A DNA stretch of 64,000 nucleotides from the NCBI GenBank assembly GCA_002189035.1, contig CM007990.1, forward strand, positions 4,402,001 through 4,466,000, written 5' to 3'. Under the pieces are notes generated by a model that saw only the letters and a program-made list of their open reading frames with translations, was not told where the DNA came from and did not search any database. Shown here in pieces: positions 1,978 to 13,449 of the stretch; the stretch's first letter is position 1; every line of letters begins with the position of its first letter. Both the position numbers and the translations under genes were made by a program. The stretch is from Utricularia gibba (lineage: Eukaryota > Plantae > Magnoliophyta).

Positions 1978-2437
1978 TTAACGCATAATTAAATTTATCT
2001 ACAAAACACATTTTGAGTTTAAATCCACAAATTTTGTTTATAACTTACATTTTAAACAAGCTAGAAACCATGTAAAGTGTATTTGCATTTTGGTGGATTT
2101 CATATGTAATTACTAATGCACAATATTGTTCGTTTTGAATATTCAATTATTATGATATTTTATACATATTTTGTATACTTTTCTAGGTCACTTATATTCA
2201 TTTTACTCTAGTTTAAACACACTTTAACTTTGGAATTACTATTAAAAATATTTTGATGTGTTTAGGAAAAAGATTCATCCAAAATTTGTATAATTATTCT
2301 ATTCAATTTCATATTTTTCCCCTTCCTCGGTCCATCACATTCCCAAGTCATTGAACCGAGTCGAAGAGTTGTCGAGGCATGATATGGATTTTGGTTTTCT
2401 TGAAAATTTACATGAGAGTCGGCAGTGTAGAGATCTT

Positions 2438-3924
2438 CTAAGAGTAATAAGATTGGAGCCACAGATCGGCATCTACGAAAGATGCGTTCAGAAAGGGCGA
2501 GGCCTGAGTTTCGTTGAGCTTCTGTGCATAGGGCACCCTGGTCGTCGTGTTGGATCCCTCGCCTGAGCAGTTGTATTCTCCATAAAACACGCTTCTGAAC
2601 AGCAATCTGTCAGCAGCAATATTCCATTTTAAATGAACAGCACGATGCAGGAATGCTAAAACACTGACTGATCTCGCGTAGGGTCATTGAAATCGCTCCA
2701 GCCCTCCGGCGCGATGACCTCAGACATCGCCGTGTAGGAGAAGACCACCGTGGAGAACGGCCTCCACGCCCGCCCCAGCCAGATTCGCCCCGACCCGCCG
2801 ATGCTGCAGTTGACGAACGCAAACCCGCTCTTCTCGTCCGCCGAGGCTCGCCCGTGGGCCGTCACCGCCCCGTCCACCACTCTGCTTCCGACAGCCAACG
2901 GGCTCGCTATGGAGACAATATGACAGTTCTGTAATGAACTGAGTTATTATATTAATTAAATAAATTAAATTTACATATCAAACATTTTTTTCTATCAATT
3001 TTAAATTAAAAAATATATATATTTTTTAATAATTACCTCATAAAATGACTTGGCGTTGCCAAAAATGAAGTCAATGGAGCCTTGTATGTAACATTCCTTG
3101 AAGTAATGGCGACCCCTGTCGTCATGTAGAGTGTCTTGTGCTCCAAAGAAGCCGCACCCCCAGAACGCCGCCCGGTCGCCGGCGATCCGCAGAGCCACCG
3201 CTTGCGCCCCGATCGCTCCGGGCTTCGGAGTCGGAGCCACATTCTATTCAAACGAGAGAATTTTGTTTTGTTTTTTCTGTACTCAAAAGTGCACATTCAG
3301 AGAGAAGAAGTTGTCGCGTCGCAGACCATAAAGCTTATGTTCTTGGCAACGAAATTTGGCGAGAAGACTTGAACGGAGCCGCTGTAAAATGTCCCGTGGG
3401 AGGAGTTCGCCGTGTCGTTCCAAACGATTGCTGTTGAAGTGTAGCCTTGTCCTTGGAATGTAATGTTAGGCTTCGTCTTCCTCACGATCACCTTCTCACT
3501 TTTTCAGGAAGATTTCGTTATTATGAGCTCACCGGCGGCAATATTCAGATAACTACACAACGAAAAAGCATGCTCACACATAAATCCCACTGTTGATCCA
3601 AATGACGAATTTTTTCAAGCTGGCGGTATCGTTGACGGCATCCACCGCAGCCTGAACGGTGGTGAAGTTGCAGCACCCGTTGGTATCAACGCACAAGACT
3701 GATGTAGTGTTCGTTTCTCCGGGAACGGAGCTCATCGGGAAATCATCGCAGACACTCTTCTCTGTTCCCTTCTCATGATGATGATGATGGCGGTGGTGGT
3801 GTCCAAAAGAAAACCATGGAATCGGGTGATCGCAGAGAATATTGTTGTGGAGGAAAAAGAGAACTGAGTTGGTGGAAGTTAAGGTTGCAAGAACAGAGAC
3901 CAAGATGGAGATAATAAGGTTCAT
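2438..3924 (-). CDS. Pectin methylesterase (type II, no PMEI domain; PME8/PME15-like), 5 exons
   Basis: Spliced ORFs give MNLIISILV..., a His-rich tract, [61 protein letters not shown] and [10 protein letters not shown]. The protein ends ...[11 protein letters not shown] with TAG at 2438-2440. GT-AG junctions keep the frame. Confidence 0.95.
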
Positions 3925-4893
3925 GTTGATGCTCTCATGGCTGGGGAGATGGAGGATGTGATATAAATGGGGCACAGTGCTTTGAGTACAAGGATGCAGT
4001 TTTATTTCTTGGAAGACATCTTCCTGTCCGAATGAGAAAACGTGCAGATACAGACCATCACATAGCTTCCGACAACAACAGCATTATGCGTAGACAGACA
4101 AATCATGGCAATGATGCAACAGAATAGAGACAACATTTAGGAACCGATCGATTGGTTAATCCATGAACCGTCAAACAGCTTGATTTAGTTTGGATTAGAA
4201 CTGTTAGAACTCAAAAACCCTATTTACCATGCTCTCTTTGGACCATTTATACTCTCTCACATATACTATGTCCAAAAAAATATATCAAGAATGCATAAAT
4301 TTCTCACAATAGTGAGAGGCTGGCAATATTTCTAAATACCTCTGCTTTCATTGGATACTTTCATCTGCAACAACGCTGCAGTTTCCCCTTCTTGGCCTTG
4401 AGGCCCTTCACCATTTTCCCTTGCTGCCCACACAGCTCCTTGCACTGCATTCTCACCTCTCAAAACTCCCAAACCCGCATGCATTTTGTTGTATTAGAAC
4501 AAACAATTTCGTTTGGAGATTGAAAGTGAAATAATTAAGTATATAATAAATTATAAATTATTAATAATTAATTATATTTAATATTCTCTAATATGATTGA
4601 TGTTTCTTATATATTTAAATTTTACGTATACTCGATTAATCAAATTCTTAATTTCAATAATTGAGACAATTTACAACCTCTCACCTTTGACTTGCATTGA
4701 TTAAAATCGCTGGATATATTCATATGCATCCGTTAGATACCATGAAACACCAGAGTTTGAGGTCTTTTCGGGAAAGGTTTCAGAAACACTTAATAATCGT
4801 GTTGGACATTTTAGTAATTTAGCTTTATGGGTAGTTTGTTATTATTTAGGTAATAAAGAAAAAAAAGAGACACTTGTTTTTGAACTGAGAAAC

Positions 4894-7187
4894 ATGGCTT
4901 TGTTGATGGACGCCGGCGCAGAGCCAAAAACAGACGAAGAAATCTTTGACCTGGAGGCTATCGCTGCCCTCAAAGAATCTACGGCTATCGAACTCAAGGT
5001 CTCTAACTTCAAATTATTCTTCTTTTTCATTTTCTTGGTGTAATTACAGATTTGTTCACTGGTTGTGCGTGTGCATAATCTCGATTAGAACTTTTTGGGT
5101 TAAACTTTTGGATGTAAATTGATTCTTCTTGGGTTGGTAATCTTGAGGTGTCGGAACTAGCTTCCCGCTTCCTTTCCAATAAATCTCTTCTAGTGTGGTT
5201 GTTTCTCAAGATATTAAAATATTTGGGGGTGGTTAATCCATTTTTCAGATATAAATGAATAATATGCTTTATAAGGATAAGCGTAAAGCAGTAAACTTGA
5301 TCAAGGTGTCTTCTTTCCATCTGTCTTCTGAAATTGCAACAATGTTGTTTTAATATTTCATGACTGATTTTAGGAAAAGGGAAATGAATATGTGAAGAAA
5401 GGGAGCAAGCACTATCTTGATGCAATTGATTGCTACACCAGGGCTATTAATCAGAAGGCATTGAGTGATTCTGAGAACTCTGTATTGTATTCAAATAGGG
5501 CGCACGTGAATCTGCTCTTAGGAAATTTCAGGAGAGCCCTGGAAGATGTTGAGCAGGCAATTAGACTTTGTCCTACAAACATTAAGGTCTGCCTTTCACC
5601 ACTTTTGTTATAATGTACCATGTTGATCTGTCCGTCAGAATACCCATTTCTTTGATTACATGTAGGCTATTTACAGGGCCGCTAAAGCAACAGTATCACT
5701 TGATCTGTTGGATGAAGCTGAATCATATTGTGAAAAAGGCCTTCAGCTGTCTCCTGAAAATATAGAACTGAAGAAATTGGCTGGACTAGTGAATGCTAAA
5801 AAACTGGAGCACAGCAAGCACGAAATAGAAGTTGCTAATGCTGTCAAAGCAGCTGAGGTTCTAGGTCCTATTCACTGGTTGAAATTACATCTTTTCCCAT
5901 ATTTTTGAAGACTCATATTTGAAATGGTGCAGGCCCTTGTCTCTTCCTTTGAGAGTAGAAAGATAAAAATGGGAAAACCAATGTATCAAGAGCTCACAGG
6001 AATTAAGAAACCAATGCTCGATAAACACAATATCATTCATTGGCCTGTCCTATTCCTCTATGCAGAGGCTATGTCTAGCGACTTTATTGAGGATTTCTGT
6101 GAGACTGACATGTTCTCCGTTCACTTGGACACAATATCCTCGCATCGAATTGCTTTATTTTTTGCCGTTACATTATGATTCTTGTTACCTTGAATCCGTT
6201 GAGGGAATGTCTCACTGTGAAGTCTGTTACTGTCATGAGCCTTAGCTTTCTAACATGTTTTCAGAATCGGCTCTGCCTCTTCCCTGGGATAGAGAAAAGG
6301 CATACCTCCGGCATGCACTTGAGCTATACTATGAGGTAACAGCTATACACCACAGCAACTGTTTGCACTATGAACCCTTTTTAAGTGATTAACACCTACA
6401 TTTGTTTTCAAAAAAATTGTTAGTCCCTCCAAACCGTGATTTTCTCTGCATTAGCATATAGATCGTCCGCACTGAATGATGTTTATACCTGCCATTATTC
6501 TTTTCAATTCTATTAGATATTTTTTTGCTTTCTGAGTTAACAGGTCTACCCCGGGGTGACATTGTCTAGGAAAGAAATCCTCTGGTATCTGTTACAAGGG
6601 ACTGCTGCATCTAATCTAGAAAACATTTGTGGTGAAGAGACTGATGATGCTGGTCATCGTTCTCTTTCAAATGGTATGAGTTTATTGACTCCTTATAACT
6701 CCAGACAGTGAGTAAACTGTAAAATTACTGGATCAAATAGTGGAGGACCCATCTATTATAGCTTCTGTTTAAATTTGAAGTGCTATTTTCCCTTCCACAT
6801 TATGGGGTTTCCAACGTATTCCTCTGCACTGTCCATCAACTTTTATATTCCATGTTAATGTTTGTCTGTTGCCTGTATCAGATCATTTAAACTGCCTGGC
6901 AATGCCAACCTTTTTGGTCTTTTACGCAGGAGGTGGCCCAAAATGGGTGAGAGTAAATGAAAGGGCAACTCTTCACGATGTTCTCATGAAGCCTGATATG
7001 ATCATTCCGGGAATTCCTGGTTTGTCCATGCTACCTTGTACCAATATATAAATTATGCAGTTTATAAAGAATAAATACTTCAGTTCCAAATCTTTGCTTC
7101 TCCTTGTGTGCAGTGTTTTTCATTGTTTCAAGAATGTCAAGCTTCTATAAGGTTTTCAGGTCCGGGAATTGGGCTCCAAATCTTTGA
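4894..7187 (+). CDS. TTC4: TPR co-chaperone of the TTC4/Cns1 family (Arabidopsis TPR2-like), multi-exon
   Basis: Starts MALLMDAGAEPKTDEEIFDLEAIAALKESTAIELK. TPR segment EKGNEYVKKGSKHYLDAIDCYTRA...YSNRAHVNLLLGNFRRALED. Cns1/TTC4 C-terminal motif IIHWPVLFLYAEAMSSDFIEDFCE. Ends ...SGNWAPNL* with TGA at 7185-7187. Confidence 0.92.
6134..6254 (+). other. U12-type AT-AC intron in TTC4
   Basis: 5' end ATATCCTC, branch-like GCCTTAGC about 10 nt before the 3' end ...TTTCTAAC. Removal joins HLDT|MFSESALPLPWD in frame. Confidence 0.85.
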
Positions 7188-7520: not shown

Positions 7521-9149
7521 TCACTGGATTTTGATCCACATACTAGTACTAGGGATCACGCCATGCACCACGAACAGCATATAATATCCAGGTGGAGCAA
7601 TCTCCACTGTTGATGGTGCTACAGCATCAGCATGGCAGCTATGGTTGAAGTCAAAGTTGCTGCACCTCACCGCTGCTACTTTCAGGACTACCATCCTCTG
7701 GTTCATGGAAAAAGAATGTGTGTTGAACGGTGGTGCAAGTATTCTGATGCTGATCATGCTCGCTCCGAGGAAGCTTTTCATCCTGAATTGAACGGTGAAA
7801 ATACTTGAGTAGCTCAGTATCTCGTCGATGAAGGTGATACTTGGCCTCAGGTAGTCGTTCTCAGGCGACAGGTAAGGCGGAGAAAAGGACTCCAAGCTCA
7901 AATCCGTGGGATACGCGACGTTGGTAAAGTTGTAATACACATGTGGGTTGCTGCCGCCGACCAGCACCCGCCCGTCGGTGAGCAGAATGGCGGTGGAATG
8001 ATAAAGCCTCGGTCTTGTAGATTCAGCCATGACAGAGAATCGGAAGTGGGCCTCTTCATTCATCTTGTATATCACCGGCCTTTTGACTGGATTTCTAGCC
8101 TTTTCCCACCCCGCTGTGCCGGCGCTGGCTCCATTTATGATGATCAAATCACCGTTAGGGAGAATCAGCATGTCTCCCATCACTCGCGGTATCGGCATCT
8201 GTTCGAGCTTCCAGTTGGGTTCTTCATCTGTTATTTTCAGGCGGCCACAGGTGTCAGAGGAGCGTGGAAAGATACCACGATCGGTCTCCCTGAAAGCAGT
8301 TGCTGGGGCGCCACCGCATATCATGATTTCTACCTCAATCTGGTCAGCGTTTTCATCTATAGGGAGCAGCACCGATGAGCCGGAGCTCGGATAGTTCCGA
8401 GCATCGCCGCCTCCGAATGTGGGGAACTCCTTGATGACGTGATCGTGCTTGTAATCGAATAAGATGGACCTCGTGTTCGCGAAGATGAACAGGTTTCCAT
8501 CGGGAAGAAGATGAACGAATGGATACAAATTGTTCTCTGAAGCGTCTCTGGTTTGTCTCAAGAAGTCCATGTTAACTGCTCCGTAACTCCTGGGCCAGAA
8601 TTCGTAGTTGAACTGCCGCCTCCCACCGACGACAATCGTGCTCCCGTCGGGCAGAATCTGTGCTGTGGCGTACCATCTTCGCTGTGCAAGAACACCTGGA
8701 AACTCGTTCCAGTCGCAGTCTCGGTCGGCGCAGGGTGCCAGTGTACGCACAGCGTGATCTCCATCGTTGAAACCTCCAGCTTGAAGAAGAGTTCCGTTGG
8801 GAAGCACAGCCCCTGAAGAACACCAGGTATCAGTCTGCACCATCAGTGCACGGAAGGTGTTCGACCCAATGTCGTAGAGAACAGAATGTGCTGTGCAGTC
8901 CGTTTTCAATGCCGTGTCGTTGGCGTCATGACGGCACTGCCCATCGGGAAGAGAGATATTCGAAGGGCCGAAGTCCGTCCGGTCGAAAATGACAACCTTG
9001 TTATTGCTGAGCAGCTGCATGTGCATGGCAGAAATACCAATGCTTTGCTGCAGGAGAGACCACTCCCCATTGAAGCTCGGAGATGAAGCAACGAGTATGG
9101 AGGTCGTTGCGGCTGCGATGACCAACAAAAACATCGTCATCAGCATCAT
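7521..9149 (-). CDS. GLOX: Secreted glyoxal/aldehyde oxidase (copper radical oxidase, GLOX family), intronless, 542 aa
   Basis: Signal peptide and family motifs SAMHMQLL, TDTWCSSG, RRWYAT, NNLYPF, RVMGDM, RLYHST, NTHSFSMNQR. The Cys/Tyr/His copper-radical ligands are present. Confidence 0.95.
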   Translation of the reverse strand: MMLMTMFLLVIAAATTSILVASSPSFNGEWSLLQQSIGISAMHMQLLSNNKVVIFDRTDFGPSNISLPDGQCRHDANDTALKTDCTAHSVLYDIGSNTFRALMVQTDTWCSSGAVLPNGTLLQAGGFNDGDHAVRTLAPCADRDCDWNEFPGVLAQRRWYATAQILPDGSTIVVGGRRQFNYEFWPRSYGAVNMDFLRQTRDASENNLYPFVHLLPDGNLFIFANTRSILFDYKHDHVIKEFPTFGGGDARNYPSSGSSVLLPIDENADQIEVEIMICGGAPATAFRETDRGIFPRSSDTCGRLKITDEEPNWKLEQMPIPRVMGDMLILPNGDLIIINGASAGTAGWEKARNPVKRPVIYKMNEEAHFRFSVMAESTRPRLYHSTAILLTDGRVLVGGSNPHVYYNFTNVAYPTDLSLESFSPPYLSPENDYLRPSITFIDEILSYSSIFTVQFRMKSFLGASMISIRILAPPFNTHSFSMNQRMVVLKVAAVRCSNFDFNHSCHADAVAPSTVEIAPPGYYMLFVVHGVIPSTSMWIKIQ

Positions 9150-9793
9150 GATCCAGATGAATTTAAAGGGTTTTTCTTGGAATGGTAGATATGCCTTCTT
9201 TCTGGTAAGATTCTGGTGTGTTTCATGTTCCTTTATTCATCTGAGAGCTTTAGATTCGGACAACTTGCTAATGCACCAAGGTTTCTTGCACTGCAGAGCA
9301 GAACACAAAGAAGGTGATGCTAATATTTCTCTGTCATGGTTTCAGCAATGTCCGAAACTACAGTCCTTGCAAGACTTGCTTTATTCCAGAGCAGACAAGG
9401 AGAGGGTAAGACCGCCCACACATGCTCCAAGGTGCATCTAGGTATCTTTTCTATGAAAAGTTCCCAGTTCTTCATTTCCTTTTCAACCCATCTCCCTTAA
9501 AATTCTCAGCTTTTAATCTATTCCTCTGTACCCCTCTTCCATTTACATTGAACTTTATCTGAATTGAAGACGAAAAGTAGAATATTTTGGTGCCAACGTA
9601 GAGTTAGTAGTGGTGATATTCTTTCGTTAGTTTTTACTGCAGCAAGCAAAGCGTAAGCTTACTTCTGAGTTTTGTGTTAATTGCTTCACTGAAAACGTGA
9701 CTGCAACCAGCAACACAGAAAAAAGGCAACACCCCTGAGAGCTACTTCATTTTTCCTCTTTCTTATCAACAGGTTGGATCTCCCCTCAACATC

Positions 9794-11408
9794 TCAAATG
9801 CCTAAACAAAACCAAGCAACAACCAGTAGCATCATCAGCAGATGGAGCGGTGGCCGGACTGCGGATGACACGCTTTTGGTCACCCCGCCCAGGTCTCTGA
9901 GATCGGCCCCTATAATTTCCAGCTGAAAGTCGCAGGTCCGGATGGAGGGATCGTCCGGCACCACCTCGCCCAGACCATCGAAATCGCACATCGTGCCGTC
10001 GGCGCTGTACTGCGCGTTGGTCTGAAACACAGAGTTGAAGGCGTAGGATACATTGTGCTCGAATGACAGGAAGCTGCATGAACCCCCTGGATAAAGAGGT
10101 GTGCAATCCGCCAGGGCGCACGCCAAGCCGAACTGCTGCTGCACTTTCGTCATGTTGGATGTGTCCCCATTGAACACACACCACCTACTCTTCCAGGTAC
10201 ACGTTATTCCCTGTAATCATACATGTACTTAACCTTATTTCCTCGTACCTCTTTGGCATGTAGACCGTCCCTTTTGCTACGGTGGGGTAGACGTCGCCGC
10301 CCCGGCCGGAAAGATCGATCCTGAACTTAGGTTCACCGTTGGACTTGTAGATCCCCCAGTGACGCGTATAGGGTTGCTCCTGGGTGACCCCCATCATGTT
10401 CTCATCAGCCAAGCTACTGATATAAATCTCTATGGAAGCTCCCGGTCGTAGATGCGTCCCCTTGTCGTTCCTGATATGAGGGAGCAGCCCCTTGTAGAAG
10501 CGCTCCGCATTCGCCGGACTCGCCGCCGGGTGGCCGTCCGTCGGCCACCCGATTTGCGCGATGACGATCTTGACATCCGGCCACCCGGCTTTGGTCAAGG
10601 CGACGATGAATGAATCGTAGATCAACTCGAAAGCGTTGGTGTACACATGGGAGCCGTCCTGGACGGAGAAGTTGGACTTGTTGTCCATGAAGGCGAACTC
10701 CAGCGGCAGCCCGTTCCGGATGACGAACTCGAACGGCACCAGTGCGACGGAGAACGGAGAGTTGGTGCCGTCCATGATGCGGAGATACTCCATCACATGC
10801 TCCTTGTAGAGTGGATTGAAATCCGCCTCCGACGGCTTCGTTATGGGGTTCAACACGTCGACGCTGTGCACGACGGTGGCGTGAAGGTAGTCGTGCAGGT
10901 TCACAACGATGGCCCTCTTCAACACCCTCATCGCTCCGATCGCCAGGACGTACCTCGTCGTGTTGCCTGGTAATGTTACGTCTGTTGCCACCTGCAGGTA
11001 CCTGCGACCGGAGAACACGATCCACATTCAAGAAATGCAGACACAGAGCACGTCTGCATGCTCGAATATTCACCTCACGTCGATGCCCATATTCTTGAAT
11101 GATCGAACGTGCTGGTTCAACCAGTATCTGGGTATCCCGACCTGGTCCTGGACGAACTTCAGGTTGGATGACGGTAACGTGAGCGTGACGACGATCCCGG
11201 TATTCGAAAATGCCTTCATCGCCTTCACTTCCACGCTGAAAGTCCTCAGATACTTGATCTCGTTTTGCAGCATTATGTCCGCCACCATAGACGGCAGCAG
11301 CCGGTGGGTCGTTTTGCGTCCCCAGTTGACGCCAATGTTACCGGATTCCGCTGCGAGTAGCATCGCCATCAACGTGAAGGCTGCGATCACCGGCGGTAGA
11401 TTCTCCAT
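9794..11408 (-). CDS. GH17 beta-1,3-glucanase-like protein with X8 (CBM43) domain and GPI signal; both catalytic Glu substituted
   Basis: Three exons, with introns at 11002-11073 and 10185-10248. Signal peptide, IGVNWG, IGWPTDG, RHWGIY, a six-Cys X8 domain (WCVFNG...ACALADCT...GGSC...SYAFNS...MCDFDG...TCDF) and a hydrophobic C-terminus. Confidence 0.92.
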
Positions 11409-13449
11409 GGAGATGATCTCTCCACTGCAGGACGGTCCACCGGAGATGTGGAAAACAACAAACGCAGAAAAAGTTTGTCGGGAAAACACATCCCTTAATC
11501 ACCCACGATAAGGAAATTATACTACAGGCCCTGCTTCCTCTGTCCGTCAATGCCTACTAAAAAGCTCCTCCTCACAAAAAAAAAAAAAAAAAAATCTGTG
11601 AATTTCGAGTGATTTCCCAAAATATAATATTTTATTGAACAATAATGCCCAATTCAGACAACCATATCCGGTAAAAGGCGACGTTGACCTTACTATTCAT
11701 TAAAAAATGCTTGCCTACGTCATCTGGAAAAAAATATTTCAACTCTCGGTAACGGATATCGATCGTCATGGGAAAAATAATTAAATACATTTGATAGATG
11801 ATTTTTTTATATTAAATATAATTAGGTATAAATGTTTGGACTATGATTTTAAATTCGTAGGAAATTCAGAACAAAACATTATATTTCTACAGTTTTAAAG
11901 AAAATAATTTAAAACTTAAGTTCGAGTATAAAATTTAAATGATATTTATCTTATACAATTATTCAAAATATTGGATGTTCTGAATATATTAATATATCTC
12001 GTAGTTCATAAATTGTATTTTATCTAATAATTTCGACGATTCAATGTTTAATTTATTTGAATAATTTGATATTTTTTCGATTCTAAATAGTCTATCGACT
12101 ATGAAGATTATTTCATACCTATTAACCTATTACAAAATGGATGCAAAAATATACTGTTCTTGATCCATTTTTTTTAGATTTATTTGGATTTTCTTTGGTT
12201 GGGGCACTAAAATCCAAAGGTGCAGGTTTGTTCGTTAGAGGCTTTTCCTGCTCGGTTGACAAAATGACAACCAATTATTTCACTGGAACAAGGAATTATT
12301 ACAACCACACATCATACAAGTCCACGCAATCCCTCTCGAGATTTTTGTTTTACAATGGATCCGACAATATTAAGTATTTGATAGATCGAATGAATACATG
12401 TAAAATTAAATATATAAAAAATATAAATTATATTAAAAAATATTAAAACTAACTAATTAATATTGATCTGTAATTTCTTAAATAATTATTGTTTTACTTT
12501 TAAATCCTCATATTGGATCTACGGGGTTGAACATGAACAAAGTTTGTGAAAAGACAAGCAATTTAATTATTTTCTATAATATTATTCTAAAAATATGGCA
12601 TTTCAATTTGTCCCATACTAAACGGACAAATCCAACGGCGAACGTAGCGTAAGATCGATCATAGTCGACGCTAGATGTTTCCGCCGCTGGAAACGAGATG
12701 CATGATTCGGGAAAAGCACGCGAGGCTTATCCGGGCATCGGCCCTGCAAATATTCAGACCGCATACGCCCCAATACGACAAAGTGTTTGATTTATTCCAC
12801 AATGTGGTCCACATGTCCTAATCGGATTAGTTTATTTCAGATAGGCACCGCTTGAATCAGCACGGTTGACATACTGTAAACATCCCGCCCTCTCCCCATC
12901 TGAAACTGTCTTTGGCCATATCCTACTGCTAAAAGCCACCACGGAAGGGGCTCCTGTTGACATCTTGTTCTCCTGTAATCGAAGATATGGAAGAGTGTTA
13001 TGGTGATTTGTGTGTTGGAATGAGTTTGGGGTTTAGGGTTTGGGATGAGTGTGCAACGTTTGGAGAGGACTAGAAGGTTGATTGACATGAGGGGGGAAGA
13101 GCCTTCCTGGTTGAGGAATGGCCCAGATGAATATTTTTCAGAAAGGCATTAGAATATTGCCCTATTCTCAACGCTATCTTCAACTTCCCATCTATTTATG
13201 CGTACACACCCCATGTTTCGAAAGCTTCACCCCATTTGGCTCTCTCTTGAAGAAGCTCTTGGCTTGAGAATTTCCTTCTTTCCATGCTGAATCCTTTTGC
13301 TCTCTGCGAAGGAATACAGCCATGATCAATACAGCAGTGCCCAGGTTGAGGTCCATGTTCGATTTAGCGTACGACAGAGGGTAGCTTCTCACAAGAAAGC
13401 ACAACAGAAACTGCTCTTTTTGTTGGTTTTTTTTGTTGTGTCACGGGAG

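Follow-up and report, generated by a model that had tools for sequence, protein, structure and literature searches.

The GH17-X8 gene on the minus strand of the Utricularia gibba window (by which we mean the whole 64-kb stretch of DNA analyzed here) is intact and is maintained by purifying selection, even though the protein that it encodes carries neither of the two catalytic glutamates of its family. We consider it likely that this protein is a nonenzymatic GH17-X8 protein of the cell wall or plasma membrane. It belongs to a clade of asterid proteins that lack the catalytic machinery.

The gene extends from 11408 to 9794 and consists of three exons with 492 codons in total (Table 1). All searches with the protein, as well as its folding, were run exon by exon. 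Exon 1 matched the Pfam GH17 profile (PF00332) with 28.1 bits over profile positions 1 to 80 (residues 25 to 104), exon 2 matched the same profile with 102.4 bits (cut-off, 28.2) over profile positions 100 to 305, and exon 3 matched the Pfam X8 profile (PF07983) with 46.8 bits (cut-off, 25.7). The six cysteines of the X8 domain are residues 2, 22, 27, 36, 66, and 84 of exon 3, and one further cysteine is located in the tail. According to hydropathy analysis, the C terminus is composed of small residues (S-S-A), followed by a V-R-P-P spacer and a hydrophobic end of 17 residues. This is the customary appearance of a GPI signal, and the protein is, judging from its sequence, probably secreted and GPI anchored. 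Both splice junctions could be fixed because they match the protein sequences of orthologues: the junction at intron 1 (...GIDVR/YLQVAT) is collinear with ...GINLTSIHIGA in Genlisea, and that at intron 2 (...YMPKR/WCVF) corresponds to the ...MPKRWCVF found in all relatives. The preliminary description of this locus, which was made from the letters of the window alone, had proposed an intact frame with a signal peptide, a six-cysteine X8 domain, and a GPI tail, and this is borne out by the gene model, the Pfam matches, and the hydropathy profile. No other copy of GH17 was found in the 64-kb window by tblastn.

Table 1. Features of the GH17-X8 gene and of the antisense RNA that overlaps it (positions in the window)
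Feature	Position	Strand	Description	Basis
Exon 1	11074..11408	minus	ATG at 11408; N terminus and initial GH17 portion	Translation, Pfam, hydropathy, tblastn to Genlisea genes
Signal-peptide-like N terminus	about 11343-11408	minus	Hydrophobic core, residues 6-20	Hydropathy
Sense intron 1	11002..11073	minus	GT..AG, 72 nt; read-through leads to a stop immediately after ...DVR	
Exon 2	10249..11001	minus	Remaining GH17 domain; all catalytic-cleft positions	Pfam GH17, E 4.7e-29
Thr-Asp (ACA GAC)	10980..10985	minus	Replaces Asn-Glu (acid/base) of NEP motif; GAC at 10980-10982	
Val	10737..10739	minus	Replaces conserved cleft Tyr of N-x-Y-P-x-F motif	
Gln (CAA)	10554..10556	minus	Replaces nucleophile Glu (A-Q-I-G-W-P)	
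Met	10392..10394	minus	Replaces Lys of D-E-N-x-K motif	Aligned to 6jms Lys
Thr	10365..10367	minus	Replaces Glu of E-(R/K)-H-(F/W)-G motif	Aligned to 6jms Glu
Sense intron 2	10185..10248	minus	GT..AG, 64 nt	
Exon 3	9794..10184	minus	X8/CBM43, linker, GPI-type signal, stop	
X8/CBM43 domain	about 9932-10183	minus	Six Cys	Pfam X8, E 4.7e-12
GPI-type signal	about 9797-9874	minus		Hydropathy
TGA stop	9794-9796	minus	End of exon 3	
Antisense intron	9442..9772	plus	GT..AG, pyrimidine tract	X4 contig loose end at 9771 continues with about 9410-9441
Antisense intron	10197..10263	plus	GT..AG	X1 and X4 contigs; X2 contig continuous here
Antisense intron	11200..11270	plus	GT..AG; within sense exon 1	X4

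The (beta/alpha)8-barrel fold of the catalytic domain has been kept. An AF2 model of exon 2 alone reached a pLDDT of 79 and a pTM of 0.82, and the nine best Foldseek matches to this model were plant GH17 chains (E values of 2e-17 to 6e-13; TMq of 0.70 to 0.77). Active plant GH17 endo-1,3-beta-glucanases (6jms, 3ur7/3ur8, 1ghs, 2cyg, and 4hpg) have the same fold as the exon-2 model, are about 25% identical to the U. gibba protein, and have the GWP, DEN, and FG motifs in common with it. The solved GH17 chains, at about 306 to 327 residues, are however without an X8 module or a GPI tail, whereas the U. gibba protein has both. When exon 2 was compared with all PDB chains by phmmer, VATD aligned onto VGNE and AQIGWP onto TESGWP of 6jms, a cedar pollen glucanase that was the alignment reference for both motifs, and neither alignment contained a gap. 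In the exon-2 model, the Gln is placed at the end of a strand that spans residues 145 to 150. The structures closest to the model are thus those of plant GH17 proteins, and the PDB chains put Asp and Gln at the catalytic places; together with the codons, the gap-free alignment upholds the initial observation of GAC at the acid/base position and CAA at the nucleophile position.

Retaining enzymes of clan GH-A need both catalytic glutamates, which in active GH17 enzymes are situated at the ends of strand 4 (the acid/base, in N-E-P) and strand 7 (the nucleophile, in E-x-G-W-P). To compare the cleft further, we set columns that are invariant across 23 canonical sister proteins against the U. gibba protein; in the exon-1 columns, many of the representatives are without an N terminus. 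Six cleft residues, all of which are present in the active plant GH17 enzymes, were found to be substituted, namely, the acid/base Glu and its Asn, the cleft Tyr, the nucleophile Glu, the Lys, and the second Glu. The sequence T-D-V takes the place of N-E-P (codons 10977-10985), so that the Pro after the acid/base is replaced by Val as well, and the Asn of the N-x-Y-P-x-F segment has become Ala. The places of the Met at 10392-10394 and of the Thr at 10365-10367 are those that we take to correspond to Lys282 and Glu288, respectively, of the barley enzyme (enzyme numbering). Retained in the U. gibba protein are the Glu of D-E-N, the G-W-P-T segment, and R-H-W-G. The presence of Thr-Asp, Val, Gln, Met, and Thr at these places of the cleft argues that the protein is most likely incapable of hydrolyzing beta-1,3-glucan; the Asp at the acid/base place could yet donate a proton. 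The nonhydrolytic character proposed at the outset, on account of the two glutamates, appears all the more plausible now that four more conserved cleft residues (the Asn, the Tyr, and the equivalents of Lys282 and Glu288) are seen to be gone.

Both catalytic codons are covered by contigs of sequencing runs X1, X2, and X4, which come from three independent studies, and GAC and CAA are unchanged in all of them. Zero indels were present across the gene in these contigs. The catalytic glutamates were, as initially proposed, lost via substitutions. An assembly error as the source of the Asp and Gln codons was rejected, since the three studies agree. One further run, labeled X8 like the domain, had no contigs on the 64-kb stretch. 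Just upstream of the 5' end of the gene is a run of about 20 A (plus strand; 11563-11600), at which the contigs of all runs stop.

The same contigs provided evidence of selection. Run X4 shows 8 coding differences from the window, 7 of which are at synonymous third positions; a share of at least 7 of 8 has a probability of 2e-4 under neutrality, with 23% of sites being synonymous. The sole nonsynonymous difference (Gly to Asp, position 10128) falls within the X8 domain at the conserved F-D-x-A-C. Because relatives have Asp at this position, the Gly allele of the window is the derived one. In comparison with two Genlisea genes, pN was 0.25 to 0.30 and pS was 0.65 to 0.70, with an omega of about 0.2 overall, 0.16 to 0.27 for the GH17 exons, and 0.12 to 0.14 for the X8 exon, all of which are rough values since dS is saturated. 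Neither the polymorphisms nor the comparison with orthologues indicates neutral evolution. We thus conclude that the gene is intact and maintained by purifying selection.

Next to be considered is the family to which the protein belongs. Relatives were collected by a word search, for which the stop-free open reading frame at 10188-11027 served as the query with its exon-2 part alone being scored, and whose candidates were 154 to 490 residues long. The nearest relatives were those of Genlisea aurea (61% and 53% over exon 2), followed by proteins of Lamiales and Solanales named glucosidase 5/8/9-like, most of which have Gln at the nucleophile place. Relatives longer than 490 residues, which were beyond the word search, were covered by an exhaustive search of 1.8 billion representatives, yielding 848 matches. 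Among 195 proteins from both searches, the residue that precedes (I/V/S)-G-W-P was Glu in 109 and Gln in 48 motif instances, with Ala, Lys, Ser, Gly, and others being found less often.

In a tree of 103 rows, U. gibba and the two Genlisea genes grouped together with a support of 100 and were nested in a clade of 69 rows (SH-aLRT, 99). When ten trait columns were removed, a clade of 49 rows still stood apart from all others (100/100), and the group of U. gibba and Genlisea was recovered with 100/99. The named members of the clade are all asterids, belonging to Lamiales, Solanales, Boraginales (Lithospermum), Gentianales (Coffea and Oldenlandia), and Escalloniales, and they include the Solanaceae Capsicum, Nicotiana, Withania, and Anisodus; no member from Arabidopsis or another rosid was seen among them. 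The nearest rows outside the clade are those of Striga, Momordica, Gossypium, Hibiscus, Amborella ("glucosidase 8"), and the liverwort Riccia, and the sister rows all have NEP and GE(I/V)GWP and, as a group, keep the Lys and the second Glu. The strong divergence from typical family members that had been noted for the U. gibba sequence is not isolated: it is the usual state of a clade that extends across the asterids, and in part it reflects a long branch common to the Genlisea genes.

The catalytic positions of the clade members have changed to various degrees. Where both columns are filled (58 rows), neither catalytic Glu is present in 33 rows, one is present in 20, and both are present in 5. 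The nucleophile column contains Q, A, K, H, S, T, or N, and the acid/base column is variable. The equivalents of Lys282 and Glu288, in contrast, occur in 0 of about 65 clade rows: the Lys of DENxK, found in 91% of the live sisters, is missing throughout the dead clade, as is the Glu of the ERHWG region, which 100% of the live sisters possess. The cleft Tyr is found in 95% of the live sisters versus 15% of the dead clade. GWPT, DE(N), and RHWG stay conserved in the clade, and those X8 columns that are conserved in the live sisters are equally conserved there. With the canonical enzymes taken as the outgroup, and with the Lys/Glu pair absent throughout the clade, the simplest reading would be that the equivalents of Lys282 and Glu288 disappeared along the stem of the clade, before the catalytic pair decayed in many lines.

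These columns also bear on whether the protein might still be an enzyme, that is, a weak hydrolase or transglycosylase in which the Asp serves as the acid/base and another residue or the substrate serves as the nucleophile, perhaps with a different glycan. The preservation of the fold, GWPT, D-E-N, and RHWG would be compatible with residual catalysis, as would the five clade members that keep both glutamates. Furthermore, a preprint on tomato cautions that an enzyme without one Glu is not necessarily dead and mentions a potato nucleophile mutant with residual activity (bioRxiv 10.1101/2021.09.29.462359). We nevertheless regard an enzymatic function as unlikely, given that the U. gibba protein has substitutions at six conserved cleft residues, that the Lys282 and Glu288 equivalents are missing from every member of the clade, including those with both glutamates, and that the nucleophile column varies freely, which is unlike the behavior of a catalytic residue.

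Members of the clade often reside in tandem arrays, as seen from neighboring locus tags in Paulownia, Buddleja, Anisodus, and Escallonia, and two predictions are fusions of two copies (P0049 from Penstemon, 886 amino acids, and P0053, 854 amino acids). In Genlisea aurea KE535277.1 (L002), a tandem second copy at 4156-6033 lies beside the intact copy at 2159-3614; in-frame stops and frame changes interrupt this second copy, which makes it a pseudogene of a pseudoenzyme gene. The Genlisea orthologues keep intron 1 and are devoid of intron 2 (L001, 1789-1793; L002, 3332-3336), which in U. gibba occupies 10185-10248. Its presence or absence is a matter of loss or gain within the family.

The contigs further revealed a spliced antisense RNA on the plus strand, which spans 9340-11544 and overlaps the whole GH17-X8 gene. 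None of the runs is recorded as RNA; X1 and X4 were taken to hold RNA because spliced contigs are present in them. All three plus-strand introns (Table 1) show, on that strand, a good donor as well as a pyrimidine tract, and minor alternative plus-strand joints were found at 10194/10349 and 10893/10993. We rejected the interpretation of these joints as sense-strand introns, since they would read CT..AC on the strand of the gene, whereas on the plus strand all three are GT..AG and are accompanied by pyrimidine tracts. An antisense coding gene is unlikely as well, as the plus-strand open reading frames over the gene had no Pfam match. The antisense RNA may originate in the gap between the GH17-X8 gene and a divergent glyoxal-oxidase gene. 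The latter lies directly downstream on the same strand (7521-9149, minus) as a single-exon open reading frame of 542 amino acids that is glyoxal oxidase/galactose-oxidase-like (Pfam Glyoxal_oxid_N, E of 6e-116, and GO-like_E_set).

The antisense RNA raises the alternative of a decaying gene that is silent in the sense direction, overlapped by antisense transcription, and only recently freed from selection. The RNA-like contigs of X1 and X4 are unspliced through sense intron 1 and contain three plus-strand introns but no sense splicing, although such contigs show presence only and do not establish that the sense form is absent. Moreover, the tandem copy in Genlisea has already been broken by stops and frameshifts. 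The U. gibba gene itself, however, has 492 codons free of stops and frameshifts and two canonical introns, and its polymorphisms (all but one of eight synonymous) and its omega speak against relaxed selection. The same residue losses are, in addition, maintained in intact genes across the asterids. Taken together, this makes decay quite unlikely.

In the reading that we favor, that of an intact and selected gene for a nonenzymatic protein, the predicted targeting signals would bring the protein to the outer face of the plasma membrane, where its X8 domain would bind beta-1,3-glucan of the callose type. The remodeled barrel might serve as a scaffold or provide a surface for a glycan or other ligand or for a protein partner, and the protein would act via binding instead of cleavage of beta-1,3-glucan. 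Its subclade branches from canonical GH17-X8 proteins, which are named "glucan endo-1,3-beta-glucosidase 5/8-like," a designation that goes back to ZERZAUST of Arabidopsis. More tentatively, the asterid clade might constitute a distinct pseudo-glucanase family derived from a ZERZAUST-like ancestor, in which the equivalents of Lys282 and Glu288 were lost first and both glutamates were then lost repeatedly, and which has been kept for more than 100 million years as a nonenzymatic wall sensor, coreceptor, or glucan organizer. We see this broader proposal as possible rather than probable. If it is true, the ligand or partner of the conserved barrel is something other than a cleavable substrate, and the function of GH17 cluster beta needs no hydrolysis.

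The preliminary description had also suggested a decoy that absorbs the glucanase-inhibitor proteins of pathogens, or a competitor of active glucanases for callose. The general logic of dead paralogues is what speaks for such a role, along with the tandem duplication common in the clade. On the other hand, nothing in the present data ties the gene to defense, and the live sisters, judging from their names, probably belong to the developmental, wall-organizing cluster beta and not to the pathogenesis-related cluster gamma. The cleft surface that an inhibitor would recognize is, moreover, heavily altered. We therefore consider this role very unlikely.

It is routine to annotate plant GH17 proteins as callose-removing beta-1,3-glucanases and to count them as such, and tomato, pepper, tobacco, coffee, sesame, and olive are all asterids. 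One cannot presume that proteins of the dead clade are enzymes, yet they are maintained by selection, and this affects how lists of callose-turnover genes are to be read in asterid crops. Within the U. gibba genome alone, the gene described here is an ordinary member of the asterid branch.

A survey of the family in 2014 described the catalytic glutamates as conserved throughout GH17 (PMC4033164), which is contradicted by this whole asterid branch. In tomato, as stated in the preprint cited above (bioRxiv 10.1101/2021.09.29.462359), 13 of 50 GH17 proteins have one Glu only and one protein has neither. GH17 proteins that lack one or both Glu have thus already been counted in tomato, and the U. 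gibba gene adds a member of a noticed but uncharacterized kind. The preprint lists these proteins but neither defines or dates a clade nor describes further residue losses or signs of selection; we infer that the tomato genes may be members of the dead clade. Within the limited literature that we could reach, we found no prior description of the clade, of its asterid range, of the absence of the Lys and Glu from all of its members, or of its selective maintenance.

Among known systems, the PDCB proteins are similar to the U. gibba protein in being secreted, in combining an X8/CBM43 domain with a GPI-type tail, and in that no hydrolysis is expected of them. They consist, however, of X8 and GPI signal only and have no GH17 barrel, whereas the U. 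gibba protein has a barrel of 330 residues that is conserved under selection. This barrel must therefore serve a separate function, and the protein falls outside the PDCB family, to which it had initially been likened in function.

A closer parallel is provided by the "atypical beta-1,3-glucanases" ZERZAUST (ZET, At1g64760) and ZETH of Arabidopsis, which have the same architecture of signal peptide, GH17, X8/CBM43, and GPI signal. ZET has been reported to act in wall organization and STRUBBELIG signaling rather than in callose turnover; it is required for wall organization and can do without its GPI anchor (PMC6726743). The tomato preprint assigns both ZET and ZETH, as signaling proteins, to GH17 cluster beta (bioRxiv 10.1101/2021.09.29.462359). 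The relatives of the U. gibba protein are named glucosidase 5/8/9-like after Arabidopsis proteins, with the tree itself being built from sequences other than those of Arabidopsis. While the live sisters keep NEP, the nucleophile Glu, the Lys, and the Glu, the U. gibba clade has lost them, with ZET standing outside the alignment. The signaling or wall-organizing role of ZET and ZETH suits a lineage that was selected for something other than hydrolysis. By analogy, the role of the U. gibba protein may resemble the non-callose, wall-organizing role reported for ZERZAUST, and the clade points to a noncatalytic use of the GH17 barrel that would match the puzzling "atypical" behavior of ZERZAUST itself.
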